From Macrostomum lignano (Eukaryota), in NCBI GenBank assembly GCA_002269645.1, contig NIVC01000184.1:310001-374000 (forward strand): a DNA stretch of 64,000 nucleotides, written 5' to 3'. Under the pieces are notes generated by a model. That model saw only the letters and a program-made list of their open reading frames with translations. It did no database searches and had not been told where the DNA came from. The first letter of the stretch is position 1. Each line of letters starts with the position of its first letter. Below are positions 4,401 to 32,285 of the stretch, piece by piece. Position numbers and translations under genes: made by a program.

Positions 4401-4605
4401 CTCGAGCAACCCGCTGACCTTCAAATCCAAGCAGATGGAGCAGAAGGCTCCTCTTCAGCGGTTTCGCCTCTTCCTTCCCTTCGGGCTCCTTGAATTGGGC
4501 CGCCTCGTAATAAAATTCAAAGGCCTCAATCCATCGGCTCCATGGTACTGTCGGTGATCCGCAGTTCGCCAGGAAGGGCGTGGGTGCAGGGATGCTAGCC
4601 GCCAT
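1381..4605 (-). CDS. Gag-Pol polyprotein (gag, protease, RT, RNase H, integrase N-terminus)
   Basis: Double zinc knuckle CTRCGRDH...CDTCGKKNHFRSCC; protease LMVDCGA; RT VPFGL and HILDD; RNase H TTDAS and TDHQAL; integrase HEGH...CVAC and VDIVG. True ATG at 4605. Confidence 0.95.
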   Translation of the reverse strand: MAASIPAPTPFLANCGSPTVPWSRWIEAFEFYYEAAQFKEPEGKEEAKPLKRSLLLHLLGFEGQRVARARQAIKENDTFAATKAELEKIFGEKPNVMVARYRFRQRQQLPGEDVKTFVAALRELTELCNYGAIQDDLIRDQLAEKTSNPRIRERLLTEKVEDLNLAKALSIAVSIEEASKEAKAMAPSTSSTAAVQSIRQPRGQKVAAKGRHRPAPAGRTAKPGGACTRCGRDHGPTTPCPAKGKTCDTCGKKNHFRSCCRSQQAAVNAADEVITVYAVPGGDREVRATLELGPDRTAVSLMVDCGARVSLLSRQTADRISGAVTSPTTTKLRAYGGLPIQLSGVTELEVRYGDKAMQHRFFVAPGGDNIVGRDLMEKLGFRVDLSGQPPGIAKVSDLTADLQARYPTTFSGAIGCCAGAVHQPKVDPAVRPVQQPLRRLPLMRQEQVGAELDKREKDGIIERVNASEWVSNLVVTAKKDGSIRICVDVREPNKALIVDKHPMPQLDEIASKIKKGRGRVFSKIDLKSGYMQMQLHESSRNLTAFITHKGLFRYRRVPFGLASAPAAFQRMLDDQAADLDGVEHILDDFIVYGRSEEEHDRRLEKLLQRLEDKGMTVNKQKCAFKQKEVEFFGFVISEAGIRPTESATAAIRDIRQPGDQKALKSFLGAANFLMRFVPHYADITEPLRRLLKADSNFDWTPECQRAFEAVKDAISKAPTLAHFDPKADTIVTTDASAKAIGAQLSQIQDGVERPVAFAARALTTTEQRYAANEREALASLWAMEKWHFYLYGRHFELRTDHQALQQLLLGPTGTGHRPLRIHRWCDRLLQYDFHVRYLPGNSNYVADLLSRWSSGSELNLIHLPDTPGPRVKAVTLEALTAGTAADETLRTAIRSVISGRWPADIDDVELRALWKVREQLSVWNNGECLAFQERAVIPESLRGQLLEQAHEGHQGIVRTKQALRDSVWWPAMDKAVETFVRHCVACETAEKNFKVSPAPLKTIRWPDSPWAEIAVDIVGELQAAPASSRYLIVVTDLHSKWPEVIPTRRPASPRRPSAVRCAACSQGGGCARRC

Positions 4606-4616
4606 CCTCGTCGCCA
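4602..4616 (-). promoter_or_regulatory. Primer-binding site complementary to the tRNA-Ser(GCU) 3' end
   Basis: TGGCGACGAGGATGG lies 1 nt after the 5' LTR and is complementary to the ...CCATCCTCGTCGCCA end of eukaryotic tRNA-Ser(GCU). Confidence 0.85.
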
Positions 4617-4617
4617 A

Positions 4618-8089: not shown

Positions 8090-10328
8090 TCAAATTTGAA
8101 TTCTCAGCTTTCTCACAGTGGTGTGGGCCATTTGCTCAAGGTATTCTAAGTGAAGGCACAAACCCGATCAATGTACTCGCAATCTCCATACTTTGCTCAC
8201 TTACCTTGAACGTTCTGCCCCTGATATGACCTTGGACTGTACAGTAAACGCCAGTTGTTGACCGAAACGCGTTGGGAAAAGTTATACGTTGATCTGCCTA
8301 CGTGGCAACGCAGAAAATACAATTGTGTTTTGCATGTATACTCAGCAACATCTCTCAACTTAGCTATGCCGTGGCAGACTTGAGTTGAGGAATGAAGTTG
8401 GGCAGCGGTGTGCGAGGGTTGGACGGATATTAAAGCTACCCCGATAAGTTTTCTCGTATCTTTCATTTAAGAATAGTCCAAGAGGAATTGCTTACTGGCG
8501 CATAGAGTGGCGACTTTGCAATGTTGCTGAATATATACCAATGGGTGCTGCAGAGAATTGCTATCTTTCAGCTTGACCCTCAGTGGGTTCTCACTGTCGA
8601 TATGGACAGATTCGGTCCAAGAGAAATCCAAGTTAAAACACGTTTACGGAAATAGCAAGCAACTACCTTCATCTCGTATGCTTCATCTCGTATTGACAAT
8701 TATTGACATTATGAGGTGATAAAAAACGATTCCGAATAGACTTGACATCCTTTCTTTTTTTATTAGAGGCAGGGGGGGTTGTGTGCACCCTGGCGCACTT
8801 TAAGCGACATAGGCACACAACCGGCAAGAGGCATTACTGCCCATTCCGCCGACTCCCCTGAGCAGGCACACAAGCGCGCGGATACGTACGCAGGCACACA
8901 CTCACACAGGAGTGTACAGCGGCCCTAACTTTATTTTATCGTTAGGCATGTACACTTCACTGCGCCTTGGGGGGTTGGCTCTCAAGGCCGTTAATTGCAC
9001 GAGCAGAGCCAAGCCGAGATTCCAATTCAGCCCCAAATTAATGTGACTGCACTTGGAATCGAGCCTGGGTCGCTGGCACACCAGAGCCTGTGCTAGACCG
9101 CTGGGCTACGGCCCCCCTGACATCCTTTCTTTACTTACCTGCTGCTTCCAGCGAGTCCGAGTGTAGCTTTTCTTATTTTTCAATCGATACGGGCCGAAAA
9201 CGTTGAAAATTGACGAGCGCAGAATGGCTACAGAAAAATTATGAAATTGATAATTAAAAAAGATGCAATATTTGCTTCAGAAGTGACTTGAACTTGGAAT
9301 ATTGGGAGCTTACACATCAGATCGTCTTTACTAAGACCGAGAGTGCCAGCCGTGCGACTAGCAGTCACACGGAGCACTCTTTCAGCTACTGACTGGTTGG
9401 TCTCGTGTTCGAATCTGTAAAACAATATAACAGTGTCCCAGTGTACATCAAAATATGGACTGGCCGCACCAATAGTTTTACGTCTACAAGTCACTCTAAT
9501 CGTCTTGATATTTTTATAAAATATAGTTTACGCATTCTATAAAGCAAGTATGCCTAATGCTACGCCTAATTTCAGAGATTTCAGTCCGCATATGGCGATC
9601 TCACGGTTTCGAAAAATCAAACGGATGCAAACTGCTACCCTTGATGGACTGGTAGCTGTCCTTCAGTGCTGCCTGCAAGAGGAAATAAGGCGGATTACTG
9701 CACACGCTTGAGCTTGAGATTAAAATGGAACTGTTACTTAATTTACTTTTTCTATCTACCATCTCTCCTGTCGACAAGATTAAAAAAGGCCAATCACCTC
9801 AGCCCTCGTTCTGGCTTCAGACGCACTACTATCCTCAGCAGCGGCAATCGAAGTTGTAGCTTCATTAAGCTCATCAACTATTAAACAGTCGTCCGAATAT
9901 TCGCTAGCATAATCCATATTGCTGTCTTGTTGAGCAAACTGACAATCAGACAGCATAGTGGCAGCTTTCAACGAAGACTTTGACTCAGTTTTGACAGCAA
10001 CGGTAGTAGACAAATAGTTCGATTTCTTATCAACCGTTGAGTCCGATACCTGCTGGCTTGTAGCGGCAGGCTCTTTCGCTGGTTCATTCGGATCAAAGCA
10101 TGTTTTATAAGCATTGGCCAGACGGCAAGCGTCGCCTACTGAAGGCTCCATCACATCTACAATGCGACCGTGAAGGGTCGAGAGAAAGCGGAGCGCCAGC
10201 ACCAAGTCTGTTGGCGGCATCGAGTCGACAAGCATGCCGGCGTTGGCCAGAGTGCATTCAAACAGGTGCAACGGACTGAAGCCACTTTCCAATGAGATGT
10301 TACTAGTGGCGTCCACTGCGACAGACAT
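8090..10328 (-). CDS. Multi-exon gene with C2-domain-like segments (exon boundaries partly approximate)
   Basis: Exons 10328-9798, about 9503-9295, 9230-9139, about 8460-8205 and 8145-8090, possibly with one more near 8500-8640. The 59-nt intron 8146-8204 is canonical and frame-preserving. Motifs SPYFDVHWDTVILF, LSKDDLMCKLPI and KLIGVALISV resemble C2 strands. Confidence 0.45.
8757..9117 (-). mobile_element. tRNA-derived SINE (family 2)
   Basis: tRNA-like head (GGGCCGTAGCCCAGCGG...GGCTCGATTCC), A-rich tail and a 14-bp TSD TGACATCCTTTCTT (8743-8756 and 9118-9131). Confidence 0.85.
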
Positions 10329-10393
10329 GCTTGAAAATTCAATAATTTTGCTGCAATATGAAATGTAGCTTTTGCTTTACAAACATCTTACTG

Positions 10394-10528
10394 GCTGACT
10401 GACTGACTGACTGGCTGACTGACTGACTGACTGACTGACTGACTGACTGACTGACTGACTGACTGACTGGCTGACTTGAGTGAGTGGCTGACTGACTGAC
10501 TGACTGACTGACTGACTTGAGTGAGTGG

Positions 10529-10560
<32 letters not shown>
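10394..10560. repeat. (GACT)n microsatellite
   Basis: Directly visible, with an internal GACTTGAGTGAGTGGCT higher-order interruption. Confidence 0.97.
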
Positions 10561-10561
<1 letters not shown>

Positions 10562-10728: not shown

Positions 10729-11172
10729 TTAAGACACTGCTAAGTCCAGCTTCATGAGAGGCAGGTCCCGCTCCCACTGCTGCCACAGAGCCTCCTCGAT
10801 CCTCCCCCAGTCTTCGTCACTGAACCGGTCGCGGAATGACCGGATCATCTCGGCTGGTCCGTCCGAGTACTCAACAATGCTCACACTGCCGGCTGAGTCC
10901 ATGCTCAAGTTGGCCTGAATGAACACGCGCCTCGGTTTGCGCCGAGCAATCACGATGTCGCGCAGACGCTGGAAGTAGGCGTCAACGGTTGAGTAGGACT
11001 CAAAGAATGCCCGGCCGGCTTCCACACTGCAGGTGGACTTGAAGCTCTGCAGGCGCTTCAGGAACTCGCCAATGGCCGGCTTGGCCACGCTGGAGATCTT
11101 GGAGCGGTCCAGGCGGACAGTCAGGTCCGGCTTGCCGTCCTCGCCCGTGATTTCGTCAATGGTGACCAGGCC
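10729..11172 (-). CDS. DPP3: DPP3-A exon 6
   Basis: GLVTI...RLDRSKI...RRKPRRVFIQ; CAG acceptor; TAA stop. Confidence 0.93.
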   Translation of the reverse strand, partial: GLVTIDEITGEDGKPDLTVRLDRSKISSVAKPAIGEFLKRLQSFKSTCSVEAGRAFFESYSTVDAYFQRLRDIVIARRKPRRVFIQANLSMDSAGSVSIVEYSDGPAEMIRSFRDRFSDEDWGRIEEALWQQWERDLPLMKLDLAVS

Positions 11173-14100
11173 CTGGTGATTGTTCGGCAAGGAGATTAGG
11201 AGATTTGCATAATTTGAAGGGAAATTTAAACACGTTGACTGCTTCCTTAAAGTAAAATGGATCTAAACCGAAGCCTACTAAATAGGAATTTACGAGCACC
11301 TGAGATGAGAGTAGAGAACTCTGCATAGCTAAGTCACTTACTGCAGCTAATGCTTTTGAGAGTGGCACGCTAAGAAGACATGAAATCCTCTAGTATAGAT
11401 TGTCGGGTAATGGTTTCAAAACCAAGCTCTCTGGCGCAGAGACGGATGCTCTAGAGAAAAAAATAGTGAATTTTCTTATTCTTGAAAAAAGTCAAGGAAT
11501 ATCAAGGCCAGAGATTTCTCAATTTGGCAATGCGATGTCGCACCTTCGACAAAGGTCGTACCGGTTTCCAAAGTCCAATTAAAAGTGGCAACAAAATTAG
11601 GAACGGAATTACATGCAAGTCAAATAGGCTATATAACTTTTTACCTTTTAAAAGGTAACATTAAAGGTAAGATGGCAGAAACTCACCTGTCCAGCCTCCA
11701 GCATCACGCGGAGCATAACAAATGCCGCCTGACTGTGCGCCTGACGCCAGGTGCCGCCATTCTCAGGTGAGTACATCTCTAACGAAGAGATACCATACCG
11801 AGCAGTGCACAGCCAGTTCACGTAGATCACCTCGTCGGCCTCTGCTTTGTCCGGATGGCCGAACACGGCCAGCACTTCGGGCACGTCGCACAGGTAAACG
11901 CCAACGCACTCGGCGCGGCACTCTTCAAAAGCCGACGCCAGATTGCTAAATTTGCCATCCCAGGTTTCGCCGACTTTGTACCAGCTGGCAACCGGCTTGC
12001 CAGTGACCAGATCTACCACCGAGCTCGGGTCGAAGTTGAACTTGCCGTCAGAGTCCTGCTGGAACAGCTTGCCGCTGCCGTGGCCAAGGAGTTCGTGCAG
12101 GCCTACCTGTGTTGGGCACAGGTGAGAGAAGACACAATTGAATCTCACTACAAGATGGCCAGGTGTGGCAACCAACATCACAACGGATAAAACGGATAAC
12201 TTGAGCAAGACGCTTAACTCTGCACTACTTCAGTTCACCCAGCTGTAAAATGGGTGCCAGCTTTAGCTGGGGTAATTGAGGCTGCGTGGCGACCCCCTCC
12301 CCCCTCCAGTCCATGGACTGGACAGCCGTAGCAATAGCAATAGCTGCGGCTGAGCTGTCGGTTGCACATCTTATTATATTATTATCACTGGAAATTGATA
12401 ACCAGTGACAGTGACATGCTGTCCAAGTGTAGTTGGAACTTTTATATAAGCTCCCCGTGATAAATTTGAACGGGAAATCTCGGATATAGTTTTAAATTTT
12501 AAAAACCTTACTGCATAAAATAAAGTATTTTACCCAACGATTCGGGATGACCGAGAAATATTCAATGATAATAATATTCCTTTTTACGGCCTAGTTGGTA
12601 CTGCAAGCTTTCACTTTAATCATAGATACGGAAATCAGGCATGTGAGACTGAAAATTTTCTGTCTATGGTCGACACTCGCTGGCATAGTGGAATTTAATT
12701 TAATCTTGGGGGCATCAATTTGATCATTCTATGCATTCAATGCACATTTTTACTGTTAGCGAAACCTGTTTTTAACTTGTTTTTACATCATATGATTTTC
12801 AGGGAGACTATGAAGGCAGTCAGGTTCCAGACGTTCATCAATGATCTGGTGCAAAGCGTGACGAGTCGTGGTGATGTACCTGATGGCGAGGAGTCTGTGT
12901 GATCATGGATGACGCCCGTTTTCATCATGGAGTGACAATCCCAGATCAATTTCAGCCCGCTTGACGCCTGGTGACATTGCCTCCATACTCGCCATTCCTC
13001 AATCCTGTGGAGAACCGCGCACGCCTGCCTGAAGGCAGCCATCAAAAGCCAACTGGCTCAACCACAACTGCAAGAGAGCTGGACACTCCGCCTGATGGTC
13101 ATTCGCTACGAGAGTGGCGAATCCTTGTCCTACAGAGGGTTGCACAGGACGCAACCCGTGAAGTAACCGTTGCAAAATGCGGAGGCTGGTACCGGCAGAT
13201 GCTGAGGTTTATTCCAGCCTGACTCGACGACATCCGATGCTAAAGCTTTTATTTGTTTATTTTATTGTTCTGTTTTTTTATTTTCTCAATGATAAGTAAA
13301 CGACTTGTGTTATAGCACTGGATATTATATTAATATAGACTGGCTGTTGAGGACTGAAATGAACTGAAACGTTTAAACGTGCTAGGTTTAAACGTGCGCC
13401 TAGTCCTCAACTGGCTGTTGAGGACTGAAATGAACTGAAACGTTTAAACGTTTCAGTTCATTTCAGTCCTCAACAGCCAGTCTATATTAGTGTTATGGGT
13501 AGGCTGAAGCGCGAACGCACAACGCGGTTTCACGTCCACAGAAACTGTCTATGGTTGAAAAAGCTTTAGCTACGAGTATATGCTTCGTGGCGGTTTCGCA
13601 GTCCGCGGAGACTGTCTATGGTTGAAACCCAAATAGAGTTTGAAGCATTCTTCTCTTGGTGGGTTGGAGAGAAAATAAGATTTAAACAGCTTGAAGGTTC
13701 GGAATTAGCCATGTTTTACTGGGAATGTGTGGTGGTGTGGAGAAGACAGTAACGGCGGACGACCCAACCACACGAAAGTCGATCATTTTGGCCGAAACGC
13801 CGACTGACCCGAATACGTGTCCGGTTCGTGCGATGGAGATGTACCTAGCAAAAATACCAGATGACGTCGGTTGTCTGTGGCCTAAACCGCTGGAACGAGG
13901 GTTTTCCATGGAAGGTTTCTGGTATCACAAGAGCCTTGTACTCGGCAAACACTGGCTTAATGAGTTCATGAAGAAATTGTGTGAGCTGGCGGGACTGAGC
14001 AATCGTGCGCACACCAATCATTGCATACGCGCCTCCGTTGTAACCAACTTAATGGAGGATGGCGTCAGCGTTTCCGAGATTCAAGCCGTGACCGGTCACG

Positions 14101-17080
14101 AACGAGCGGAGAGCGTTGAACATTACAACAAGAGATTGAAGTTCTCCAAAAAAGTCAACCTATCCTGAGCAATCAGTGGGCGACTCTCTGGCACTGCGGA
14201 ACAAACCCTGGCATCGGCTGGTCAGAGCGCCAGCAACGCGGGAACAAGTTCGACTGCTGGATGCATCGTACTGTCACAAAATACGACTGCGTTGGGCATG
14301 CCTGGGTCAACTGTAGCTAACCAGGGCGTATCGATTGGTGCCAACCAGGCGAGCGTTTTTGAGAACTGCAAATTTGAGAATTACACATTCAACATTATAT
14401 GATTAGAATGATCAAATTGATGCTCCCAGAATTAAATTGAAATCCGCTATGCCAGCGAGTGTCGACCATAGACAGAAAATTTTCAGTCTCACAAGTCTGA
14501 TTTCCGTATCTATGATTAAATTGAAAGCTTGCAGTACCAACTAGGCCGCAAAAAGGAATAACAAACCAGAAGTTGCTATGGTAACTATGCTGTAGCTATA
14601 TAAATTGATAGTGAGCCTCCAATACTCTAATACCGTCATGAACAGGTGTACAAGCTTACGAGTAGTCAAAGCTGATACCAAGCTAATAAAACAACAAGCT
14701 GTGAAGTACCTGCAACTCGTTCGCCTGTACAATTCGCCTCATCCAGACATCTCGGTCCTCAGCAGCGAGAAACGTAGTCTTTGGATCCGAGAAACTGCTA
14801 GACAACACGTTACCCAGCGAAACGTTCTTGAATCCCTCCGACTGTCTGATGTCATCGTAGTTGGGAATGTTGATTCCAAGTGGCGGCTCGCTGCTAGCAA
14901 AAGTCACAATCTCCAGCGCAGTGAAGTCAGGCTGCAGAAATTTGTCCTTTTCATAAGCAGCTGGCCACGGAAGCAGCGGCAGAAACTTCTCAGCGTTGGA
15001 AACGAGAGCGTTGAACTTGGCGCTCTGCTCTTTGTTCACCACGGCTACGAAGCTTTCGAATTCGCCGCGAACTCCGAATGGATCTCTGTTGTCAGTAGAT
15101 GGAGCATCGAGTTATTTATTGGCATCTATTATTATCTACTTGTCTAAATTTAAGTTTCGATGGAGTTATAAAGAAGGTACCAATAGTTTGGCCAAATGGG
15201 GAGTAAAAACGCTGTTGGAGACCAGGAGAAGTCAGCCTTGAATCCTTCCCGCCACTGTTTCACTTGTTCCGTGTGACGCTGTATCTTCTTCTTCTGCTTC
15301 GGACGTCTTCTTTACCCTCTTAGGTCCCTTGTGTTGCTTTGTTTTCTCGCGAGACCGAGCTTTCCATGAGAAACTCGGCACCCGAATCAGCAACTTCTCC
15401 CACCCTCTCTGTGGACCGACTCTCGCCCCTTATAGACTTTGATTGCTCCTAAATCCCCACGATCTCCTCAATAAGCACCCGCCAACTGTACTTCCTACTC
15501 CCCTATCGTTTGCGACTTCCCCTAACACCTACCCCAATCCGAGGCTTTCGGATCGTCCGTGACTGTACTGATTCACCATGAGTCGCGGCATGATCAGAGT
15601 GAGTAGAGAGTGCGCCTGTAGCAGAGCATGGAATAGAAGTTGAGGATCAGAGTGGATGATCACCGAGTCTGAGCCGAATCCAGCCAAATAACCATAGCAG
15701 TAACAGTATTCCTAAGTAAGTCCCTGTAAGATGTGCATCACGAGAGAGCTCTGACATTTCTAGTACAGTTGGCGTCAAGAACCTTCGTCTGTTACAGACC
15801 GAGAGTCCCGTCTCGTTAGCGGGAGTTTTCACCGGATGCACTCCCGCACTGGTGACTGGTGGCGGCCACGCCTCTGGCGTGTACACCTTTAAACAACCCG
15901 GGCCCGCTGTCTAGATAATGGGATCTTGGCACTATCCAGAGGCGGACAAAGTCTAGGGGACAAGGCCTGGCGTCTGTACCTATCAGAATATTATTTGCCA
16001 CGCCCGAACCTGTAGGACTCGATGAAGCCCATGTAGGTCTCCACAGCCGGTCCCTTGTCGCGAATCCAGGCCCTCGACCCGGCCTTGTGCTCGTCGATGC
16101 TGCCGCCGGCGAACGAAGCCGCGTAGCGACGCAGCATCTCCGCTTGGTTGGCGTTGAGCGCGGCCGCTTCGGCGTTGCGCAGATGCGGCAGCGCCAGCGA
16201 CATCAGCTCGCGGTAGTCGCCCCGCTCGACACTGAACTTGCCGCTGCGGCCGCTGGCCTCGTCGGTGAAGTCGGTCGGCTCGGCCACGACGCTCGACTCT
16301 GCCGCAGCCTGACGGATGAGTCAGAAATGAGCGATGGGGTTGCCCACTGGTTTTTAATTAGCGCGGCTCTTAAAAACAATTTCTGAATCTGAAGAGCCAC
16401 AATATTTTGTATTGATTTTATCGCCAGGTTATCGATCGCAACTCAGATACCATTCAGTATAAACACGAGCCACACTGAGCAGCTGACCGGTGAAGCGAGG
16501 CTTATGTTGTAAAGAGAATCCCATTAGAGAAAATTCGCACCTGCACGATCCGATAAGAGCCTCCGTCAGCACAATTGAACAGCCTCTAATTAATCTAAAT
16601 TTCGCACCTGCACGATCCGATAAGAGCAGCCGCCTGCAGACTTGAACAGCCTCGTGTTGTAGGCGCTGATCTGCCGGCTGTCCAGAAATGCTTGCGCCAG
16701 TTTCGCGTCAGACTCGTTGCAGTTGTCAGAGAAATAGGCGGTGATCCCGGCTGTGCCGAGGCCCAGCTGCCTGTTGCGCTCCGTGAGGCTGCTGGCAGCA
16801 GCTCGAACGCGTTGCCAGGCAACCCGGACTCGCTCGCTGGAGGCGTGCGCCTCCGAAGCCGTGATGATCCTGGATTTTACCAACAAAAACTAGCTAGAGT
16901 TTAACAGTTAAAGGCTAGCGAGCGAGAGAGGAGAGAGAGAGGAGAGAGAGAGAGGAGAGAGAGGAAGAGAGGGAAGAGAGAGAGAGAGAGGGAGAGAGAG
17001 AGGGAGAGAGAGAGAGGAGAGAGAGAGAGGAGAGAGAGAGGAAGAGAGGGAAGAGAGAGAGAGAGGGAGAGAGAGAGAGG

Positions 17081-17135
<55 letters not shown>

Positions 17136-17898
17136 AGGAAGAGAGGGAAGAGAGTGAGAGAGGGAGAGGAAGAGAAAGAGAGAGAGAGCTCTTGGCATCC
17201 TCTGTTCTGATGTCTATAGCCGAACTAGCAACTTTTTGCCTTTTTATCAAATTGCTCATAAGATCATACACATATATATGCAGCCAAGGTATTTCAACTC
17301 AGCGAAGACAGCAAGTCACGTGACAGCAATCTGCGCAGCCACAAATGAACGAGAACATAGATAATACTCACTTGTCGAGCGCCTCCTCAGATAGATCCGG
17401 CAGAATTTTCGTGTCGCCAAATGATTTATAGTTGCCCAAGTTGCCCAGCACCTGAGTGGCGTACATGAGAAATGCGTCCCAGTCCGCATCGGAGACGCCA
17501 GCTTTGCAGGCGGCTCGCAGCTGCTCAGGCGTCTGTCGCCGGAACACCGACTGCAGCACCAGGAAGAGTCCGGGAGACTCAGCGCTGGTCTGGTGCAGGC
17601 AGATCAGGCCGCCTATCCAAGAGGCCCGGTACAGGTGATAGGCGTACGCCTTCTCAGCCTGGCTCAGCTTCTCAAATGCGGGCCCGCAGGCCAAAAAAGT
17701 CACCGGGGCGTCTGTGGGCACCGTGTAGAGAGATCGGTCCATAACTGGCTGCTGAGTTGCTTGGAGACTCGCTGAGAACAGAGCTACTTGCTGCACTGGT
17801 TGCTGGGTGGGTAGCGAGACTGCTGCTGCTGCTGTGCTTGGCAAGGTTCCAAATCGAGAGGCGGCTGCCACAAGCGGACGAAGCGACGACTTCAAGAA
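10729..17898 (-). CDS. DPP3: Dipeptidyl peptidase III, copy A (intact, six exons)
   Basis: Exons 17742-17372 (extension from 17898/17889), 16869-16608, 16308-16010, 15085-14710, 12106-11687 and 11172-10729. All junctions are GT-AG and phase-compatible. Motifs [21 protein letters not shown] and RQAH. Confidence 0.96.
11687..12106 (-). CDS. DPP3: DPP3-A exon 5 (zinc-binding HELLGH and EECRAE)
   Basis: 420 nt, phase 0/0, GTGAGT donor. Confidence 0.95.
12201..12345 (+). mobile_element. SINE family 1, 5'-truncated
   Basis: CORE-like segment matching 6597-6820. Confidence 0.75.
12810..13222 (+). pseudogene. IS630/Tc1-like transposase C-terminal fragment nested in the Crypton-like element
   Basis: VIMDDARFHH...LPPYSPFLNPVE...KCGGWYRQMLRFIPA, with a frameshift and a stop. 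Confidence 0.75.
13331..13489. repeat. Fold-back MITE-like element containing a 70-bp perfect palindrome
   Basis: 49-bp inverted arms at 13331-13379 and 13441-13489; 13411-13480 is fully self-complementary. Confidence 0.9.
13725..14168 (+). pseudogene. Tyrosine recombinase catalytic C-terminus (DUF3504/Crypton type)
   Basis: CPVRAMEMYL, PLERG...WY...LGKHWL, TNHCIRAS (HxxR), VTGH and EHY. Confidence 0.85.
14710..15085 (-). CDS. DPP3: DPP3-A exon 4
   Basis: [11 protein letters not shown]...[23 protein letters not shown]; 376 nt. Confidence 0.95.
16010..16308 (-). CDS. DPP3: DPP3-A exon 3
   Basis: RGDY...WIRDKGPAVETYMGFIESYR; 299 nt. Confidence 0.94.
16608..16869 (-). CDS. DPP3: DPP3-A exon 2
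   Basis: GLG..GITAYFSDNC...ISAYNTRLFK; 262 nt. Confidence 0.93.
16921..17190. repeat. GA-rich polypurine microsatellite in DPP3-A intron 1
   Basis: About 270 bp of degenerate (GA)n, compared with about 30 bp at the homologous site in copy B (43971-44000). Confidence 0.95.
17372..17742 (-). CDS. DPP3: DPP3-A exon 1 (from the conserved Met)
   Basis: MDRSLYTVP...GNYKSFGDTKILP; GTGAGT donor. Confidence 0.94.
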
Positions 17899-18580
17899 CT
17901 TAAATAAATTGTTGAGACATTCAATAGTAATCACAAGACATGCTTTACCGTAAAATGGGAGTTGCTGAGATGCAAGGACTCAAAGAGGTTTCATTCTTTT
18001 TTATCCCAATTTTAAATCTGACAATAGTGTCCATGCAAAGCTTTTTTTATGCAGTCCACTACACTAGAAGGTATGTCATAGAGAAGCTTAAAACCTATTC
18101 ACCTTAGTGTTTATAAAAAGCGAAAATAAAAAATGTTCAACAAACTTAATGGAATCGATAAGGTTTTATTACTTGGCCAGCTCAGAAACCGGGCAAACGA
18201 TTTGACAACAAAAATCGAACAATAATTCGTAGAAAAAAGACTATTTCCACTTTTTGTTTGTCTTTTATAATTGTCTTCTAGCTTAACAATTAGCAGCAGT
18301 TGACGGCATTTAGGAGCAGAATTGGCAGACTGGTTACAAAGTAAGCATATTAAAAACTACAATTGGTTTACGGCAAAACGCCAAAACATACGAGTAACTA
18401 CAAAGTCTATTAGTAACTTATTTTAATTTTTCTGTTTTCTTAAATCTGCCAAGTGTCACTCAGGACTATCAATTTTGAATTATAAGACTAAATCAACAGT
18501 CAATTTTAAAATTATGATAACTATTTTGAGTTCGATCCATCAACATGGAATAAATCAGCCAGACAACCGAATCCGCGTGC

Positions 18581-19012
18581 TCAGGCCAGCTTCATGAGAG
18601 GCAGGTCCCGCTCCCACTGCTGCCACAGAGCCTCCTCGATCCTCCCCCAGTCTTCGTCGCTGAACCGGTCGCGGAATGACCGAATCATCTCGGCTGGTCC
18701 GTCCGAGTACTCAACAATGCTCACACTGCCGGATGAGTCCATGCTCAAGTTGGCCTGAATGAACACGCGCCTCGGTTTGCGCCGAGCAATCACGATGTCG
18801 CGCAGACGCTGGAAGTAGGCGTCAACGGTTGAGTAGGACTCAAAGAATGCCCGGCCGGCCTCGACACTGCAGGTGGACTTGAAGCTCTGCAGACGCTTCA
18901 GGAACTCGCCAATGGCCGGCTTGGCCACGCTGGAGATCTTGGAGCGGTCCAGGCGGACAGTCAGGTCTGGCTTGCCGTCCTCGCCCGTGATTTCGTCAAT
19001 GGTGACCAGGCC
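18581..19012 (-). CDS. DPP3: DPP3-B exon 6
   Basis: Near-identical to 10729-11172; ends LPLMKLA*. Confidence 0.92.
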   Translation of the reverse strand, partial: GLVTIDEITGEDGKPDLTVRLDRSKISSVAKPAIGEFLKRLQSFKSTCSVEAGRAFFESYSTVDAYFQRLRDIVIARRKPRRVFIQANLSMDSSGSVSIVEYSDGPAEMIRSFRDRFSDEDWGRIEEALWQQWERDLPLMKLA

Positions 19013-19306
19013 CTGGTTATTGTTCGTTTCGAATATTTATAGTTATGGTAGAAAATATCTTAAATTTTACATCTGCTCCTAGTTGAGAATATTGAGACAA
19101 ATTCGCCATAGAGTGGTTTCAGAGTGGTTGCAGGTAACATAGGAAATAGGAAAGTTAAATAGGAAAGAAGTGACTCTAGCTAGACGACCCTAAAACGACG
19201 AGATATCACAGTAAAATGATTTCGGGGCCGTTGTTGAATCTGAAGCGGGCTGGAGTCGCTGGATAATCACTGATTTGCGTCCACAGATACTATTGTAAAA
19301 TAACTA

Positions 19307-20054
19307 CCTTAGTGCGTCCAGAAAGTTCTTGGACACCCCTCCTATCTCTGCATCTGTTCAATCGATTTTTATAAAAATTTACACAAACAGGAACCAATAT
19401 GTAATGAGTTCAGTGCTAAAGTTTCAGCTTAATCGGGTTGACAGAGCAAAAGCAATCGATCATTTACTGAGGAAGCTACGAAATTAGCAATACGATTTAA
19501 AACTCAACAAAATGCAAAAGTTAACGAGCAAACAGTTCAAACTTCAAACTGACAAGTTCCAGAACTTCCGAAAACAGATCACCAATCGTGAAAATCTTCA
19601 GAAGAATCTTCATTCCGTCGAATTGGCGATTCTTTTGCTGTTAAACCATCTGAGGCCGGTTCCGCGTCTCAGCATCTGAATCTGGCTATGCTGCTTACTG
19701 CTTTGTTCTTTTTTTGCTCTTTAATCTACTGGCTAAACCTTCACAGCTTGCATTATTATTAACTCAATTAAGGTATTTATCAATACTCAGCGAAAGCAGT
19801 GATATTTTGCTGATTAATTTTTAGAAAAATGAGCTGCAATGTCACCACTGGAGTCCAGATTCGATGCTCTTCAAAAATCGTTTTGCTAATTTCATAGGTT
19901 CCTCAGTAAATGATCGATTGCTTTCGCTCTGTCAACCCGATTAAGCTGAAACTTTAGCACTGAACTCATTACATACAGGTCCATGTTTGTGTAAATTTTT
20001 ATAAAAATCGCAGAGATAGGAGGGGTGTCTAAGAACTTTTTGGACGCACTAAGG
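19307..20054. mobile_element. Tc1/mariner-type MITE
   Basis: About 190-bp imperfect TIRs starting CCTTAGTGCGTCCA; TA TSD at 19305-06 and 20055-56. Confidence 0.85.
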
Positions 20055-20056
20055 TA

Positions 20057-20507
20057 GATGGGCCACTCAGGCATACATGCGTATTAAAACTGCTTTCTAC
20101 TTTCAGTTCAGTAGCAAAGAATAATGCATAAGCTACTCTATAAAAAATAAGGCAGCTGAAATGACTTTGATAAGTTTAGAAGCCACAAGCTTGCAGGTGT
20201 AAACAACTTGCTAATTGGTTCAGCAATAATGTACATTTGCCACTCCACTGAAATGTACAGGGCAGCTTTAGGCTGGAATTCCGAGAAAGGCAATAAAAAT
20301 TGGGGCGGGGCGGTGCGCGGGGGTAGTGTGGAAAGGCGCCGGTTGGAGGGTTGAGGCTGTTGGGTAGCCAATAAATGGCCAAAATAGCTAAATAGCCAAT
20401 AAATAGACAATAAATGAGCCTTGGCTATAAAATACATCAAGATGCTTCTGTTTAACTTACTACTGAACTGAAAGTAGCTTACGTGCAAATGTGCTGAGTG
20501 GCCCATC
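20057..20507. mobile_element. TA-flanked MITE abutting the previous one
   Basis: TIR GATGGGCCACTCAG and inner CTACTTTCAGTTCAGTAG, both inverted at 20460-20507. Confidence 0.7.
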
Positions 20508-21071
20508 TAGTCATTTTAGAATTTGTGGTTGCGTCTAAATTTGTCTAATTGACTCATTTATGTGACTCGACAGTTGTCTGTCTGTCGCCATACAGTCGTT
20601 TGAGTCGTTTAAACGATGAATTCGATTGGGATAAGTGCTACCTAGAAACTTAGCCCAGATGTCAAAGGCTCATTGTGGGAATTGCAGAAATACTGTGGCT
20701 CAGATGCTTTGAGTCAAAACTCATACGCTCGTAGAGGATCTGATATCTCAGGCTAGATAGCTGGCTTTCAGAGCATGGATGCTTTTTTGCTTTAAACCAT
20801 TGTCCTTAAGAAATTAGTAGTGACTCTTCAAGGTCAAAACCTACATCTATATAAGCTCGAAGTTTATACAAAAAAATGTGGCAGGTGCAGATTGCTAGTT
20901 GGAATTTTAACATTGCATTTGCCATGCCAAAATGACATCAACTTTTTTTCAGACAAATGTCTACACAGCTAGTAAAAACAAGCTAAACCACATTGGCCTC
21001 GACACTACTGCAACAATATAAAGGTGACAGTAGAGATTACGACAGGCACTGAACAGTAAAACAAAACTCAC

Positions 21072-21491
21072 CTGTCCGGCTTCCAGCAGAGCGCGCAAAA
21101 TAGCGAATCGAGCCCGACTGTGCGCCTGACGCCAGGTGCCGCCATTCTCAGGTGAGTACATCTCTAACGAGGCCACCCCGGCCCTGGCCATGCACAGCCA
21201 GTTCACGTAGATCACCTCGTCGGCCTCTGCTTTGTCCGGATGGCCGAACACGGCCAGCACTTCGGGCACGTCGCACAGGTAAACGCCAACGCACTCGGCG
21301 CGGCACTCTTCAAAAGCCGACGCCAGATTGCTAAATTTGCCATCCCAGGTTTCGCCGACTTTGTACCAGCTGGCAACCGGCTTGCCAGTGACCAGATCTA
21401 CCACCGAGCTCGGGTCGAAGTTGAACTTGCCGTCAGAGTCCTGCTTGAACAGCTTGCCGCTGCCGTGGCCAAGGAGTTCGTGCAGGCCTAC
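21072..21491 (-). CDS. DPP3: DPP3-B exon 5
   Basis: HELLGH and EECRAE; 420 nt. Confidence 0.94.
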
Positions 21492-21612
21492 CTGTTCAAA
21501 TAGGCCGCAGATAAGAGAAGTTGATGAAGCAAGTTCGCAAGAGTTAAAATTACGAGTAAAATAGACCGAACTAGACAAACTAAACGAGCAAATACATATA
21601 CAAATTGTCTCA

Positions 21613-21860
21613 GTGCTCTGGTGAGGCGCTCTGATGTGCCAGAGGCCCAGGCTCGATTCCAAGTTCAGTCACATCGACTTGGGTCTCCTCGTGCAGTTAG
21701 CGCCCTTAAGTGCCGACCCCCCCCCCCCAAGCCACCGTGAAGTGTACATGCCTAACGATAAATAAAGTCAGGGCCGCTGATCAGGGGAGTTGGCGGAATG
21801 GGCAGTAATGCCTCTCACGGGTTGCAGGATAATTTCGCTTAAAGTGCATCAGGTTGCACA
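21613..21860 (+). mobile_element. SINE family 2, partial
   Basis: Reverse-complement match to 8757-9117 with an internal deletion. Confidence 0.7.
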
Positions 21861-21926
21861 CAACCTCTGCCTCTGGTAAAAGGCTATAAATTTATACAAA
21901 TTTATAGCAGATGCAACGTGACCAAC

Positions 21927-22301
21927 CTGGACTTCAAACGACTGTGCAATACGTCGAATCCAGATATCTTTATCCTCAGCAACGAGAAACGTAGTCTTTG
22001 GATCCGAGAAACTGCTAGACAACACGTTGCCAAGCGAAACGTTCTTGAATCCTTCAGACTGTCTGATGTCATCGTAGTTGGGAATGTTGATGCCCAGCGG
22101 TACTCCGCTATTAGCAAAAGTCACAATCTCCAGCGCAGTGAAGTCAGGCTGCAGAAATTTGTCCTTCTCATAAGCAGCTGGCCACGGAGCAGCGGCAGAA
22201 ACTTCTCAGCGTTGGAAACGAGAGCGTTGAACTTGGCGCTCTGCTCTTTGTTCACCACGGCTACGAAGCTTTCGAATTCGCCGCGAACTCCGAATGGATC
22301 T
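21927..22301 (-). CDS. DPP3: DPP3-B exon 4 (frameshifted near 22187)
   Basis: CCACGGAGCAGC here vs CCACGGAAGCAGC in copy A. Confidence 0.9.
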
Positions 22302-23345: not shown

Positions 23346-26300
23346 TGTAGTGAGCCGCTAGTTTAGTGTTAGGCGTCGCACTTGGTCAGCAGTTTTCCTC
23401 GCCCTCGCCCTCGCTCTCGCCCTGGGTTGCTGTCTGCCGCTGGTCAGCTTCCCGCCTTCCCTTGTCTGCCTGTTTGCTGCCCGCTTTTCCCGTTTGCTGC
23501 CCGTTTCCTGCGCCTCTGTTCACAGCCCTCAGCTTCTCTGCTGTGGTCTGTCCTTGTTTCGTTCCAGTCCTGTTTCCTCTGTCATGTGAGCAAGTCACAT
23601 GACAGATCTTGTTTTCTTGGAGTCCTAAAGTGCAGTAAACATGTTTACTGCACTCGCTGGTCCTGTTTACGGGAGAATCACGTGCCTAAGGTCCTTAACT
23701 TATCTAAGGAGAGGAGTGACTCATGTTTCTAAAAATAGACACAGAGTCACAGCCTGGCGCACTCTGCTTAATTTACCTCAAGTGACGTCAGTTCTAAAAA
23801 TACAACAAAGTCACGAGTTCTTGTGCGCTTTGGGGCAGAGGAGAATCCCGCGCAACAAATAGGACCCCTCCCCCTTGTTTCCGTCAAGGAGTTTCTCTAG
23901 AGTCTAAAGTTCCGAGTGTTCAGCGTCCTGTCTGAGCGTTAGTCATTCGTTCTCTAAGTGTCTGAAACGCCCGTTCTGCGTCTGCGTACATTTGCTTTCC
24001 TATAATTGGTCTGACTGAGACCCCTCTAAAGCCAACCCCGAGCCTACGGCAGGCTGACACAGCCCTCCAATCCACCCACCAAGCCCCCACCAGGCGAGCG
24101 AGACGCTTTAAGGATCTGCTGATGAGACGCCCTGTACGTTGAGCTGCAAATCTGCACACGGTGCTGAGTTCGTTGACTTGTTTATTTCGTTCCGACGGGA
24201 AGCTCACCTCATCGAAGGCCGAGACCATGAAGGAACTGGTGGCAGCACTACCTACGCTACTAAGAGCTAAGAATGCTTCCGATAGAAGAGGCTCGAAACT
24301 TAAGGTAAACTTAAGTGCCTAAACCGGGAAGCCAACAGCGTCTACTTCATTGCTGAAGCAGCGGTGAGATCCGACTACGACACACCCAAGCCAACCGCTC
24401 TTTCGAGAACGACGTCGGCCAGCAACTACGACGAGATCAACATGTTCAACAAGCGAGACGAGAGCCGGTGCAGCAGCCGGCTAGATCAGCACGTCAGCAG
24501 TTCGAGGCCTGCGGCAGCAGACGCCGCCGCGGCAGCAGCAGTGAGCAACGACTTCTGTCAGCAACCGACGCCGAGGCGAGGTGCGAGAAGCGATGTTCCC
24601 GACGACCCACCAGACGATCTTTTGCAAGGCCTGGACAACATTGGCCAGAACATCACGCACCAGGACGTGAGGACCATGATTGCAGTCCTGCAGCAACAGA
24701 TGGAGCGGACCGTGAGTAAATAAGTTAAGATTTTCAAATTTACTGCAAGTCAGGGCATTCATGTCTGGCTTGCCGCGTTCGAGCAGCGTTGCAATGTGGA
24801 GCGCATCGTCGACCCGTTCGAGATGAAGCAACACCTCATCGCGAGTCTTGGCTTAGCTACTGCGTATACTGCCTTGCTTGGTATGAATCTTCCGCGCTTC
24901 GCCAGCTACGAGGAGGTTAAACAACGTCTGATAGAGCGATTTGCCCGTCATGGTGGTGCTGATGAGTACCGAGAATTGCTGCGACGTCGTCAACAAGGCA
25001 AGAATGAGTCAGCAGAAGAGTTTGCTGACGCCTTGAGAACTTTGGTGAACGTGCGTATCCTCGAATGCACCCTGAAGACCGCGAGAAGGAACTTGCCGAT
25101 CAATTTCTTGCTGGTATCCGGACGACTCCAGACTTGCGTGAACGGCTTTACTGGATTCGCCCAAATAATCTTCTCGCCGCGATTCGTGAACTACGACGAC
25201 TAGAAGGCGCCAAAGAGTTGGCGCAGCGATCCGCTCAACCCCCGGTTCGGATGTTTGACGGGGAGCAGGACGGCGACCCGAAGCCCGACGTCACCGCCCA
25301 AGCCTTGCTAACTCCAACCGATTTGATCGAGAAGCAGCAGCGACTGCTTGATCACCTGGTGCAGCGTGACCAACAGCAGACAGCAAGCCCGTCATCGAAG
25401 GCTGTGATCTGCTACGGATGAGGACAGCCCGGTCACCGAAGTGCACAATGCCAGTTTCGCCAGAACCAGGGAAACGGCCAGCCGGAGAGCGACAACGGCA
25501 CCACCCTCCGAGAGGTCCAAGCCAAGGCTACTTGGCAGACTCCGAGAGATCACCAGAAGAAGAGAATGTCGGCTGTGCAGGCGCCAATGCCCAGTCCGAC
25601 AGTCGCTCGTCAGTAAGTGACGCGGAGTGCGGAGGTTTCGTGGACACCTCCCTGAATAAAAAAATCCATGCGCATGAGGCCGATCCGTACGTCACAGGCC
25701 GAGTAGCGAGTCGAGAGGTCCCTTTCTTGCTAGACAGCAGCAGCCGGAAAAACTTCCTTGGTTCGTCAACCTGGGCCGCTATTACACCTCGGATGCCTCG
25801 TTGTATTATATCGCATGCTCTATTCCCGATTGCGTAACTATGTATGATGGGACGCAGCTCCCTCTTGCTTGCAGGGTGTCCGCCGCGTCAAGCAGATCTC
25901 TCTAAAGGGCCAGGCTGCCCCGCAGGTGCCCATCTCCGACGGGATCGCCCGCAGCATTGCCATGATTCACAAAAAGGTTGAGGCAGACATGGCTTAGGAA
26001 GCCGCAGCCGCCAACCAGGAGCAGTCCAAGCCCACGCCAGCTAGCCTCGAAACGACGGGCCGTGAGCATCGCCGTTCCCAAACTGCAGCTCACATCTTCA
26101 TAGACCTGACAGAGCCGGAGACTCCGATGCCTCGTCCCGAGAGCGAGATAACCCAGGCCGGCCCTTCCGTCACTGAGGTCGTGGCGAAGAGTGTCGCTAC
26201 AGCTTCAGCATCACCGATCAGCGGCAAGCGGGTCAGCGGCGTTGGTGACCAAGGCCGAGCGACGAGACGCCCGACCGGAGACGTCCGCTGACGCTGGCGG

Positions 26301-28164
26301 ACCACTGGCGGACACTAGTTTCTTTTGTAGGGTCGGCTAGGAGCGTCGGATAGAGCCGGCCTCACCACCTCGTGACGACGAGACCTGGCTGCCAACGGTC
26401 CCAGAGCCCGAGGTCTCGGAGGACCCAGAGCAAGCCGAGGCTGCCTGCCAGACCGAAGACCTCCCCGAAAGCCGAGATCCCTATGCGGCCGCCTGGACCG
26501 AGCTGGCTACGGAGGTCCGCCGGGCCCTGGCCCCCGGCCATTCGGAACCCCCAGCGCCGCCGAATTCGCCGGATCCGCAGGCGGCGGTCTCGGGAACGGC
26601 CAGAGACGACGATGGAGAGCCAGTGCCGGCGAACCTCGCGCCAGAGGTCCAAGCCGCCGTCAATCACTACATCAAGGCGGTGGATTACCGGGCTCAATTA
26701 CTGACGGGCGCCGCTCAGCTGGGCACCCTGCCAACCCTTGCGGGGTGGCCGCGGTGGGCCAGCCTCCGCGCCCTGAGTGACGACGACCGATAGCGGCTGA
26801 TGGACGAGGCCGCCCAGCTGTCCGCGCCAACCCTGCGAAACCCACCGCACCGGGAGACGGCCCGCACAGTCACCCGCTTGATCGCTGGCCGGGCTCCCGA
26901 GGTTCCGGACATTGTGCGGATGTGCGACCGGGTACCAAGGCTAAGCCGCGTGTGCTCATGACAGTGACCAGGAGAGACTAGTTAATCGGCACTGGCCCTT
27001 TCCCCTTTTAACTTGCCTAGGCCTGTGCTTGAAGGCGCATTTCGTTCGCTCCCAATCTCTAGCCCCTTTTTCTGCAGTCCAGGGGCAACTGCATTGCGTA
27101 CAAGCCTTTGAATCTCGGGTTTTCTTTACGGTTAGCCCGGCCGCATTTAACCCGTAAATTCGCCTTTTACGAGGTATTTTCCCCTTTCTGCCTTCCTCGG
27201 AAGCGCCCATTGTTCCCGCGGGCTCTGCCAATTGACTCCCGGCATCCCACCATATTTAGGCGCTAATTTTCTGGGCCGGCGCCCCCAACCTGCTACTGAA
27301 TTTTAATTTTTGCTGCCATTGTGCCCGAGAGGCTGGCCCGAGAGGCTTGCCAGCCTGTTCGTTTTTAAGCTCCATTTTAGGGCTCTGCCTTGGCGCGGGC
27401 AACCACTTTTAGGCCTCCGGTGCTGCGTAGGTTTGCCAAGTTTTAAGCAACGTCTGCTGCCCTATTTTTTAGCCTCTCGGGCTCTGCCAGCCTTTAAGGC
27501 ATCCCGCCATATTTAGGCGCCTTTGCTTCGCAGGGGCTGGCGCCCCCCGCTACGCCATTTCGGGCTACAATCCCGGCCTTGGCCCAGCCGTGCAATAATT
27601 CTGCAAGACAATTTTTAAGTTTGCTAAATAAATTTGCCAGACATTTTTAAGTAAACCCATTATTTTCAACTATTAAATAAAAGCACGCTCCGCTTTCACT
27701 TCGCCTCTTTATTTGAACGGGAAGAGTGTGAGTGAGCCGCTAGTTTATTCATCTAAAGTCATCCGTTCTCTAAGTGTCTGAAACGCCCGTTCTGCGTCTG
27801 CGTACATTTAATTTCCTATAATTGGTCTGACTGAGACCCCTCTAAAGCCAACCCCGAGCCTACGGCAGGCTAACACAGCCCTCCAATCCACCCACCAAGC
27901 CCCCACCAGGCGAGCGAGACGCTTTAAGGATCTGCTGATGAGACGCCCTGTACGTTGAGCTGCAAATCTGCACACGGTGCTGAGTTCGTTGACTTGTTTA
28001 TTTCGTTCCGACGGGAAGCTAACCTCATCGAAGGCCGAGACCCGAAGGAACTGGTGGCAGCACTACCTACGCTACTAAGAGGTAAGAATGCTTCCGATAG
28101 AAGAGGCTCGAGACTTAAGGTAAACTTAAGTGCCTAAACCGGCAAGCCAACAGCGTCTACTTCA
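23346..28164 (+). mobile_element. Non-autonomous LTR retroelement (gag-protease only, no RT or integrase)
   Basis: 5' LTR 23346-24349 and internally deleted 3' LTR 27727-28164 share about 400 bp. TG...CA ends, 4-bp TSD ATAT, degenerate tRNA-Leu-like PBS at 24351 and PPT at about 27715-27726. Confidence 0.8.
24364..25840 (+). pseudogene. Decayed gag and aspartic protease
   Basis: RRRQQGKNESAEEFADALR and DQFLAGI; zinc knuckle CYG*GQPGHRSAQC; protease VPFLLDSSS. Several stops and frameshifts. Confidence 0.8.
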
Positions 28165-31138: not shown

Positions 31139-31586
31139 AGTCTTAGATATAAGTTGGACTCTCAATCTCAGCGAGTCAGTTTGATGACCTCAGTCAGTTC
31201 AAAGACAACTTAATCACTCAGGACGGGAGTCTCGCCATTCGTGGTGATTGAGTTGTCATTGAGTCGTCATTGAGTCAGTTACTTTTTGTGGGAACAGATA
31301 GATTTATGGCACTGTTTTCGCGCACAGCAAAAGATATTCAATTCATTTTTTCTCGCTACTACTCATTAGTAGACGATCTGCTATACAACACCGTAATTAA
31401 CGGCAAGTAGAAAAATTAAACCCTAGCACGTTTTCATCAATTTCAAAGGTTTTTAAAGTAAGTCAGGCTGAATATTATGAATCTACTCCAGTAGCTGGGT
31501 AGATATTTGGCACCTGTCTAATAATCATCCTGGATAATAATCATAAAAATTTAAATTGAACCAGCCACTGAAAAAAATGCCCGAAC

Positions 31587-31885
31587 CTGTAGGACTCGAT
31601 GAAGCCCATGTAGGTCTCCACAGCCGGTCCCTTGTCGCGAATCCAGGCCCTCGACCCGGCCTTGTGCTCGTCGATGCTGCCGCCGGCGAACGAAGCCGCG
31701 TAGCGACGCAGCATCTCCGCTTGGTTGGCGTTGAGCGCAGCGGCTTCGGCGTTGCGCAGATGCGGCAGCGCCAGCGACATCAGCTCGCGGTAGTCACCCC
31801 GCTCGACACTGAACTTGCCGCTGCGACCGCTGGCCTCGTCGGTGAAGTCGGTCGGCTCAGCCACGACGCTCGACTCTGCAGAAGC
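31587..31885 (-). CDS. DPP3: DPP3-B exon 3
   Basis: 299 nt, near-identical to 16010-16308. Confidence 0.93.
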
Positions 31886-31914
31886 CTGACGGATGAGTCG
31901 GGAAGGAGCGATGA

Positions 31915-32285
31915 TGTTTTTTTTATTAGATTAGAGGCAGGGGGTTGTGTTCACCCTGGCGCACTTTAAGCGACATAGGCACACAACCGGTGAGAGGCAT
32001 TACTGCCCATTCCGCCGACTCCCCTGAGCAGGCATACAAGCGCGCGGAGACGTACGCAGGCACACACTCACACAGGAGTGTACAGTGGCCCTAACTTTAT
32101 ATTATCGTTAGGCATGTACACTTCACTGCGCCTTGGGGGGTTGGCTCTCAAGGCCGTTAATTGCACGAGCAGAGCCAAGCCGAGATTCCAATTCAGCCTT
32201 AAATTAATGTGACTGCACTTGGAATCGAGCCTGGGTCGCTGGCACACCAGAGCAGCTGCGCTACCGCTGGGCTACGGCCCCCCTT
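31915..32285 (-). mobile_element. SINE family 2
   Basis: Full copy with a 9-bp TSD GAGCGATGA (31906-31914 and 32286-32294). Absent at the homologous site of copy A (about 16330). Confidence 0.88.

Follow-up and report, generated by a model that had tools for sequence, protein, structure and literature searches.

How can two neighboring genes be nearly identical over most of their coding sequence and, in a few short segments of the same exons, differ so heavily that even the silent sites are saturated? The question is raised by two DPP3 genes (peptidase family M49) that lie head to tail on the minus strand of a 64,000-nucleotide (nt) stretch of the Macrostomum lignano assembly Mlig_3_7 (contig NIVC01000184.1, positions 310,001 to 374,000), which is called the window below and whose own positions are used unless another locus is named. 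Copy B lies upstream and copy A downstream. The pair reflects an old tandem duplication followed by ongoing gene conversion, in which three of four divergent patches (patches 1, 2 and 4) would have been kept by selection for a remodeled A; we favor this reading on the sequence comparisons that follow, while holding it well short of certainty.

The assembly was made from PacBio reads with Canu and then polished by means of Pilon; a genome-guided transcriptome was the source of the gene models (PMC5730564). Our own models were built by comparing the window with itself and mapping splice sites, and human residue numbers were set by alignment to PDB 3fvy.

Identity and divergence between the two DPP3 genes

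Copies A and B each have six exons, separated by GT-AG introns at matching positions, and their coding sequences differ at 89 of 2154 aligned bases. Fifty-three of these differences fall in four patches that together span 131 nt, two of them in exon 4 (alignment columns 192-211 and 321-373) and two in exon 5 (columns 302-321 and 377-414), and all four are 32-60% mismatched. When the 89 differences were placed at random, none of 20,000 placements matched the observed maximum of 12 differences within 20 nt or the longest identical stretch (376 nt), and the result was unchanged when the permutation was confined to exons 4 and 5. Over its first 191 nt, exon 4 shows a single substitution, and B lacks one base; after patch 1 there are 4 differences across 109 nt, and then patch 2 begins. 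In exon 5 a single difference within the initial 301 nt is followed by patch 3, 55 identical bases and patch 4.

Each patch changes the encoded peptide (all gene and patch coordinates are on the minus strand). Patch 1, in which 10 of 20 nt differ, reads SSEPPLG in A (14875-14894; human residues 383-389), with G385E and I386P, and NSGVPLG in B (22092-22111), where G385 is retained and I386 is valine. Patch 2, at the 3′ end of exon 4, differs at 17 of 53 nt and reads AAEDRDVWMRRIVQANEL in A (14713-14765; human 428-445), with S442A, F443N and V445L, and B (21930-21982) has the canonical SFEV. In patch 3, where 12 of 20 nt differ, A reads TARYGIS (11786-11805; human 546-552), with M546T and A549Y, and B reads MARAGVA (21171-21190). 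Patch 4, at the 3′ end of exon 5, differs at 14 of 38 nt; A reads QAAFVMLRVMLEA (11693-11730; human 570-582), with R572A, I575M and L579M, and B reads RARFAILRALLEA (21078-21115), retaining R572 and I575 and carrying Q570R, V574A and V578A.

The silent sites separate the patches from the rest of the genes. By the Nei-Gojobori method, the proportion of synonymous differences (pS) is 0.735 in the patches, which is saturation, and the proportion of nonsynonymous differences (pN) is 0.277, compared with a pS of 0.054 and synonymous and nonsynonymous divergences (dS and dN) of 0.056 and 0.007 in the other 673 codons. The amino acid is unchanged in 22 of the 45 patch codons although their silent sites are saturated; together with a dN/dS ratio (omega) of 0.12-0.24 among copies of A, this speaks for constraint rather than decay.

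Non-coding sequence divides the genes differently. In a sensitive search no homology between A and B was found in introns 3, 4 and 5 or in the region 3′ of the stop codons. Introns 1 and 2 are about 95% alike, intron 1 being about 95% identical once a length difference in a (GA)n tract is set aside, and intron 2 of B is the A intron enlarged by insertions that total about 11.4 kb. Homology upstream ends 138 nt before the ATG. In A, the homologous 5′ block, with those 138 nt, exons 1-3 and introns 1-2, extends over 16002-17880; its counterpart in B, split by the 11.4 kb of insertions, lies at 43581-44692, 32285-32361 and 31579-31913. The 5′ exon edges of A and B are identical from the first exon base, and so an intron boundary alone has been no barrier to conversion.

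These results bear out all the sequence statements of a preliminary description of the locus. The near-identity of exon 5 and of most of exon 4, the four strongly different patches with their heavy silent divergence, the unrelated introns 3-5 and the nearly identical intron 1 were all recovered by alignment; the four peptide pairs it quoted proved exact, the human numbers it gave (G385, F443, A549 and R572) agreed with the alignment to 3fvy, and the permutations bore out the clustering. It had overlooked a 1-nt frameshift in exon 4 of B.

Copy A (17742-10729; PAA88517.1, Mlig003174g3) was modeled from GT-AG splice sites and translation. Its exons are at 17742-17372, 16869-16608, 16308-16010, 15085-14710, 12106-11687 and 11172-10729, and its intact frame of 723 codons matches PAA88517.1 (P0123) exactly. 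Copy B (44554-18581; PAA88518.1, Mlig003174g2) has exons at 44554-44184, 43920-43659, 31885-31587, 22301-21927, 21491-21072 and 19012-18581; its introns 2 (11.8 kb) and 3 (9.3 kb) both contain transposon insertions. The ATG of A lies 838 nt after the stop codon of B, and the span 11687-22301 that was described at first runs from the end of exon 5 of A to the start of exon 4 of B.

As assembled, the frame of B is broken between ESYR and HELLGH by the 1-nt deletion in exon 4. The window has CC at 22186-22187, where A has TCC and the B copies of two further loci (L001 and L002, described below) have CCC. The annotated product (PAA88518.1, P0122) has 420 residues and ends after this frameshift. 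The site is intact in full-length B-type proteins elsewhere (P0121 and P0001) and in UniProt A0A1I8FUN5, which belongs to a separate set of gene models; the frameshift is an uncorrected homopolymer error or else a lesion private to the window copy.

Both genes belong to family M49 on each of the sequence criteria applied. The top protein matches were M. lignano entries, followed by animal DPP3s at about 52-54% identity, and human DPP3 structures were matched at E = 5.8e-233. The Pfam profile PF03571 (Peptidase_M49; profile positions 2-547/548) scored 691.9 bits for A and 714 bits for the B-type protein P0121, which places A 22 bits below the B type. An overall identity of 96% among M. lignano DPP3 proteins masks the two types, which clustering at 90% merges; that they are functionally distinct is plausible from their patch residues.

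Patch residues and the substrate cleft

To our knowledge, DPP3 is normally a single, highly conserved gene in animals. Compared with human DPP3 (PDB 3fvy, 3t6b, 5e2q and 5e33), the M. lignano genes form a tandem pair of six-exon genes; identity is about 52% over the full length, and the catalytic set is common to both copies. The zinc ligands, E451, E316, Y318, N391, N394, R399, D496, H568 and R669 are all retained in A and B, as are HELLGH, EECRAE, ESYR and QAH, the four motifs that the preliminary description had called intact. HELLGH and EECRAE define M49 (PMC9101112, PMC5667867), and the family regions R1, R2 and R5, three of five such regions, R5 being the QAH..R segment (PMC5667867), were found in both copies as ESYR, as GINIPN with R399 and with the oxyanion residue His568, respectively. 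Neither copy has the ETGE motif that binds KEAP1 in human DPP3; the equivalent sequence is LVTGKP.

Against this conserved background, an alignment with 119 animal DPP3 orthologues sets A apart. Six residues without variation among the 119 are replaced in A but not in B (G385E, F443N, V445L, M546T, R572A and I575M), so that no orthologue shares the state of A at these positions, and A also alters the nearly invariant I386 (to proline), S442 (to alanine), A549 (to tyrosine) and L579 (to methionine). A388L is common to A and B. Arg572, which belongs to region R5, is alanine in A and arginine in B and in all 119 orthologues; its loss makes typical DPP III behavior of A less certain, and membership of the family by homology is unaffected.

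Published structures and simulations place several of these residues in the substrate-binding cleft. In human DPP3 the bound peptide is paired with the strand A388-N391, and R572 bonds through its guanidinium group to the carbonyls of substrate residues 4 and 6, from P2′ onward, a backbone contact that is conserved in the Bacteroides enzyme as well (PMC4824452). Among the subsites, I386 belongs to S3′, P387 to S1, S1′ and S2′, and A388 to S1′-S3′; G385 and S384 touch a bound inhibitor, and N545 touches a cleft ligand (PMC9101112). F443 packs on the P3′ side chain (PMC9967118, PMC8836397), and S1′ is delimited by P387, Q446 and H568 (PMC8587566). The changes G385E and I386P of patch 1 thus adjoin the strand that binds the substrate. 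From these contacts, patches 1, 2 and 4 hold residues of the prime-side subsites, and patch 3 is linked to the cleft by the neighboring N545 alone.

A new substrate specificity of A is plausible given these positions. From its residues, A is predicted to remain active on short arylamides and to bind longer peptides differently. The gene offers a natural paralogue in which the catalytic machinery is kept and prime-side residues are changed (Arg572, Phe443, Gly385/Ile386 and Met546/Ala549), and thus a ready experiment on the prime-side preference of M49 peptidases.

Further copies of the locus and explanations of the mosaic

Look-ups of other M. lignano proteins led to additional copies of the locus, which were compared exon by exon. 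Two of them, L001 and L002, are both on contig NIVC01000749.1 and each consist of B followed by A; L003, at the end of NIVC01000748.1, holds exons 5 and 6 of A. Relative to the window, L001 shows 99.84% identity in its A region, the divergence of L002 and L003, with introns counted, is 3-7%, and orthologous A introns are 93-99.8% identical between loci. M. lignano has three subgenomes (S, L1 and L2) with a single-nucleotide divergence of 1.9-2.4%, and redundancy and chimerism in Mlig_3_7 are known (PMC10733133, PMC5730564). The locus copies fit three subgenomes plus assembly redundancy, the B-then-A loci being a few percent apart, like the reported divergence (PMC10733133). The split between A and B, in contrast, is much older than that between subgenomes, because silent sites in the patches have reached saturation and the introns no longer align. 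Recurrence of the mosaic at separate loci likewise shows that the duplication is older than the subgenome split and that the mosaic is no consensus artifact.

B-type patches were found in all three B copies. Patches 1 and 2 are unchanged A-type in every A copy that includes exon 4 (window, L001 and L002), and patch 4 is A-type in L003 and in the remnant of it that is left in L002. Around the patches, sequence has moved between the genes. In L002, A and B have common variants that occur in no other copy, at column 106 of exon 4 and columns 231 and 255 of exon 6; exon 2 of its A differs at 2 positions from the neighboring B and at 10 from A of the window, and exon 3 of its B is A-like across the first 27 columns. 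Patch 3 of A is overwritten with B sequence in L002 and in L003 (P0134), of which L003 also has the B state at column 46 and L002 does not; A-type patch 3 is seen in the window copy only. We conclude that transfer of sequence between A and B continued after the subgenomes diverged and that patches 1, 2 and 4 were spared. The saturated patches, the unalignable introns and the shared variants of L002 agree with the old duplication and repeated conversion that had been proposed at the outset. Beside these results we note that P0001 (PAA77353.1), annotated across the B exons and as far as the last A exon of L002, is apparently a hybrid gene model.

The pattern, as read from sequence, is known from tandem paralogues in which islands of divergence persist despite interlocus gene conversion, and the locus is a new example of it. 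Selected islands in converting pairs occur in the primate red and green opsin genes and in RHD/RHCE, and theory for conversion between paralogues with islands held by selection is reportedly due to Innan and to Teshima and Innan. Coding near-identity beside non-homologous non-coding DNA, short and sharp segments of old silent divergence, and variants that are common within a locus and absent from orthologous copies are all features of known cases of concerted evolution, among which the yeast ribosomal protein duplicates are a case of interlocus conversion (PMC2988524). Unlike the known cases, the polyploid M. lignano supplies diverged replicas of the pair, with three islands stable and one erased, and the putative selective basis in this species is drawn from residue identity. 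The locus is therefore a compact and statistically clean instance of concerted evolution with islands, replicated across recent polyploid subgenomes, in which one island has been caught erased.

The comparisons show the following history. The duplication far predates the recent genome multiplication of M. lignano, and interlocus gene conversion has kept transferring sequence between A and B, leaving most of the coding sequence only about 5% diverged at silent sites. In the 5′ third, conversion tracts span exons and introns alike; in the 3′ two thirds, the introns have diverged or were replaced, and conversion is restricted to exons. Four short segments evaded it and preserve the original, saturated divergence. 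Beyond this, we suggest that conversions over patches 1, 2 and 4 have been eliminated by selection. Copy A would then be a peptidase with remodeled S1′-S3′ subsites and a preference for another substrate length or sequence, and B the conventional enzyme. We infer such selection from the A-only changes at otherwise immovable residues, from the codon constraint and from the islanding of patch 1, an internal segment of 20 nt with converted sequence on both flanks in every copy. That A was neofunctionalized through the loss of Arg572, Phe443 and Gly385 and has been defended by selection against conversion from B is a more tentative proposal, to which we give slightly less than even credence. Were it true, the subgenomes would be natural replicates, some of which have already lost the patch 3 island, and the balance of conversion and selection, as well as the share of each patch in DPP3 specificity, could be measured directly. 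Much less likely than this proposal is conversion templated by spliced RNA, which would account for the exon-exact 5′ limits of the homogenized tracts.

Several observations weigh against selection as the keeper of the patches. The exact B sequence stands at patch 3 in A of L002 and of L003 (P0134), two of the three diverged A lineages, and P0134, with its patch 3 overwritten, looks intact in exons 5 and 6. Patches 2 and 4 stop 3 and 6 nt before non-homologous introns and may persist because distal homology to complete a conversion is absent. Copy B alone replaces the invariant V578 (by alanine) and the nearly invariant Q570 (by arginine) and V574 (by alanine), where A keeps the consensus; when the patch differences are polarized by the consensus of the orthologues, 11 are derived in A, 3 in B and 6 changed in both, an A-derived excess with a binomial p of only 0.057. 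Of the columns of exons 4 and 5, 42% show no variation, and most of the cleft residues are encoded in these exons, so proximity to a binding residue is expected for nearly any leftover segment. Saturation of dS in the patches means that dN/dS cannot tell changed from relaxed constraint there. Finally, exon 5 of A in L002 (L002 positions 42288-42678) has a frame-breaking deletion of 29 nt that removes the RQAH region, and with the frameshift in B of the window this may indicate that some copies are decaying. Enrichment of the patches for contact residues was rejected as evidence, since by a rough literature count about 8 of about 32 named contacts fall in 45 of 265 codons, where about 5 are expected, which is not significant.

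Three claims of the preliminary description are accordingly narrower than first put. Its derived state of A at G385, F443, A549 and R572 stands, but B is not canonical throughout (Q570R, V574A and V578A). Three of the patches hold documented prime-side contacts (PMC4824452, PMC9967118, PMC9101112, PMC8587566), but the placement of the patches beside substrate-binding residues is not a significant enrichment. The proposed protection by selection agrees with the stability of patches 1, 2 and 4 and with A-only changes at invariant residues, but patch 3 has been overwritten and two patches are at exon ends.

The strongest competing explanation is mechanical. The patches would be random remnants of old divergence that conversion has failed to erase, heteroduplex across strongly mismatched segments tending to be rejected, and the substitutions in A would be tolerated rather than selected. 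The ends of patches 2 and 4 close to non-homologous introns, the erasure of patch 3 in other A copies without obvious harm and the lack of contact enrichment against an invariant background of 42% all speak for it. We nevertheless consider it unlikely, although it deserves to be taken seriously: at the 5′ edge of the exons identity reaches the first base, which means that a boundary by itself does not stop conversion; patch 1 is internal and 20 nt long, has a marker of post-split conversion 86 nt away and yet occurs in every A seen; and the changes at residues invariant in 119 orthologues and at documented ligand contacts are found in A only. An exon-edge effect as the sole cause was rejected, patches 1 and 3 being internal and the 5′ exon edges perfectly homogenized. 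Less probable again is that A is degenerating or partly disabled, with constraint on the groove relaxed, conversion from B repairing the gene and the patches being unrepaired damage. The universally conserved R572, F443 and G385 are indeed lost, the Pfam score of A is lower by 22 bits and A of L002 has lost its QAH region. Half of the patch codons, however, keep their amino acid at saturated silent sites, a mark of long constraint; the catalytic, zinc-binding and N-terminus-anchoring residues are all intact in A, the 723-residue frame in the window is open with low omega among A copies, and A is annotated in a transcriptome-guided gene set (PMC5730564).

Explanations that dispense with an old duplication or with the mosaic itself fare worse. 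A recent duplication into which the patches were imported singly, by template switching or micro-conversion from a third, diverged DPP3-like donor, would suit the 20-nt length and sharp bounds of the internal patches, as multi-nucleotide events can have both, but we think it very improbable: introns 3-5 and the 3′ flank are unalignable, unlike those of a recent duplication, and there is no third diverged M. lignano DPP3 among the protein matches listed. In the rest of the window the longest matches of the patches measure 9-12 nt, a chance-level length that yields no donor, and a local donor or template-switch origin was rejected for that reason. Least credible is an artifact of assembly or consensus, from collapsed or chimeric haplotypes in a repeat-rich polyploid. 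The polished PacBio assembly has known redundancy and chimerism (PMC5730564, PMC10733133), and the 1-nt deletion in B resembles a homopolymer error; against this, the patches recur in three separately assembled loci with their own introns and private variants and in a protein model of another gene set, and the two genes, whose introns are distinct, occupy a single contiguous stretch. The collapse of haplotypes that the preliminary description had named as a possible undoing of its proposal was thus not borne out, the mosaic being repeated on two more contigs.

Conversion between old duplicates with selection on patches 1, 2 and 4 consequently remains the history that we prefer. A protein database gave only M. 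lignano entries above about 62% identity when DPP3 of other Macrostomum species was sought, and no expression data for these gene identifiers were found in the full-text literature or supplements of M. lignano papers.

Leader sequence, repeats and mobile elements around the genes

Upstream of the ATG of A, about 64 codons are open without an ATG (17743-17934), and the last 138 nt of this leader are common to B (44555-44692). GenBank proteins labeled 'partial' contain leader sequence upstream of the ATG. In UniProt A0A1I8FUN5, exons 4-6 of B are linked to A by way of the upstream leader, a structure that suggests read-through or polycistronic transcription of the B-A pair.

Several repeats lie within the introns. 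Intron 1 of A contains a (GA)n tract of 270 nt (16920-17188), which is far shorter in B. A 67-nt unit that includes the last bases of exon 2 together with the splice donor has a tandem duplicate at the very start of intron 2 (43575-43704 and 16535-16616); in the B genes of L001 and L002 (about 11130-11750) it occurs in at least five copies, which places equivalent donor sites in series. Intron 2 of B includes an open reading frame (ORF; 33615-34703, plus strand) with a weak, sub-cut-off Pfam match to the helix-turn-helix domain of Tc3-type transposases, and near it are minisatellites with units of 60 nt (40812-41521) and 58 nt (42440-43447) in 12-17 copies. In intron 3 of B, direct repeats of about 409 nt (23941-24349 and 27757-28164), 97.6% identical and 3.8 kb apart, border a G+C-rich segment and may delimit a small element bounded by long terminal repeats (LTRs). 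An ORF fragment in intron 4 of A (13725-14168, plus strand) matches the tyrosine recombinase (Phage_integrase) family and is probably what remains of an element resembling Crypton or DIRS.

A repeat of about 370 nt occurs 3′ of A (8751-9118), in intron 2 of B just upstream of exon 3 (31917-32284, 94.6% identical) and, more diverged, in intron 4 of B (21628-21881); it is a dispersed short element. Just 3′ of A there is also an (ACTG)n tract of 170 nt (10390-10561), much longer in L002. The G+C-rich first 4 kb of the window contain a long ORF on the minus strand (620-4617) with protease, reverse transcriptase, RNase H and integrase in the order of a Ty3/gypsy-type LTR retrotransposon.

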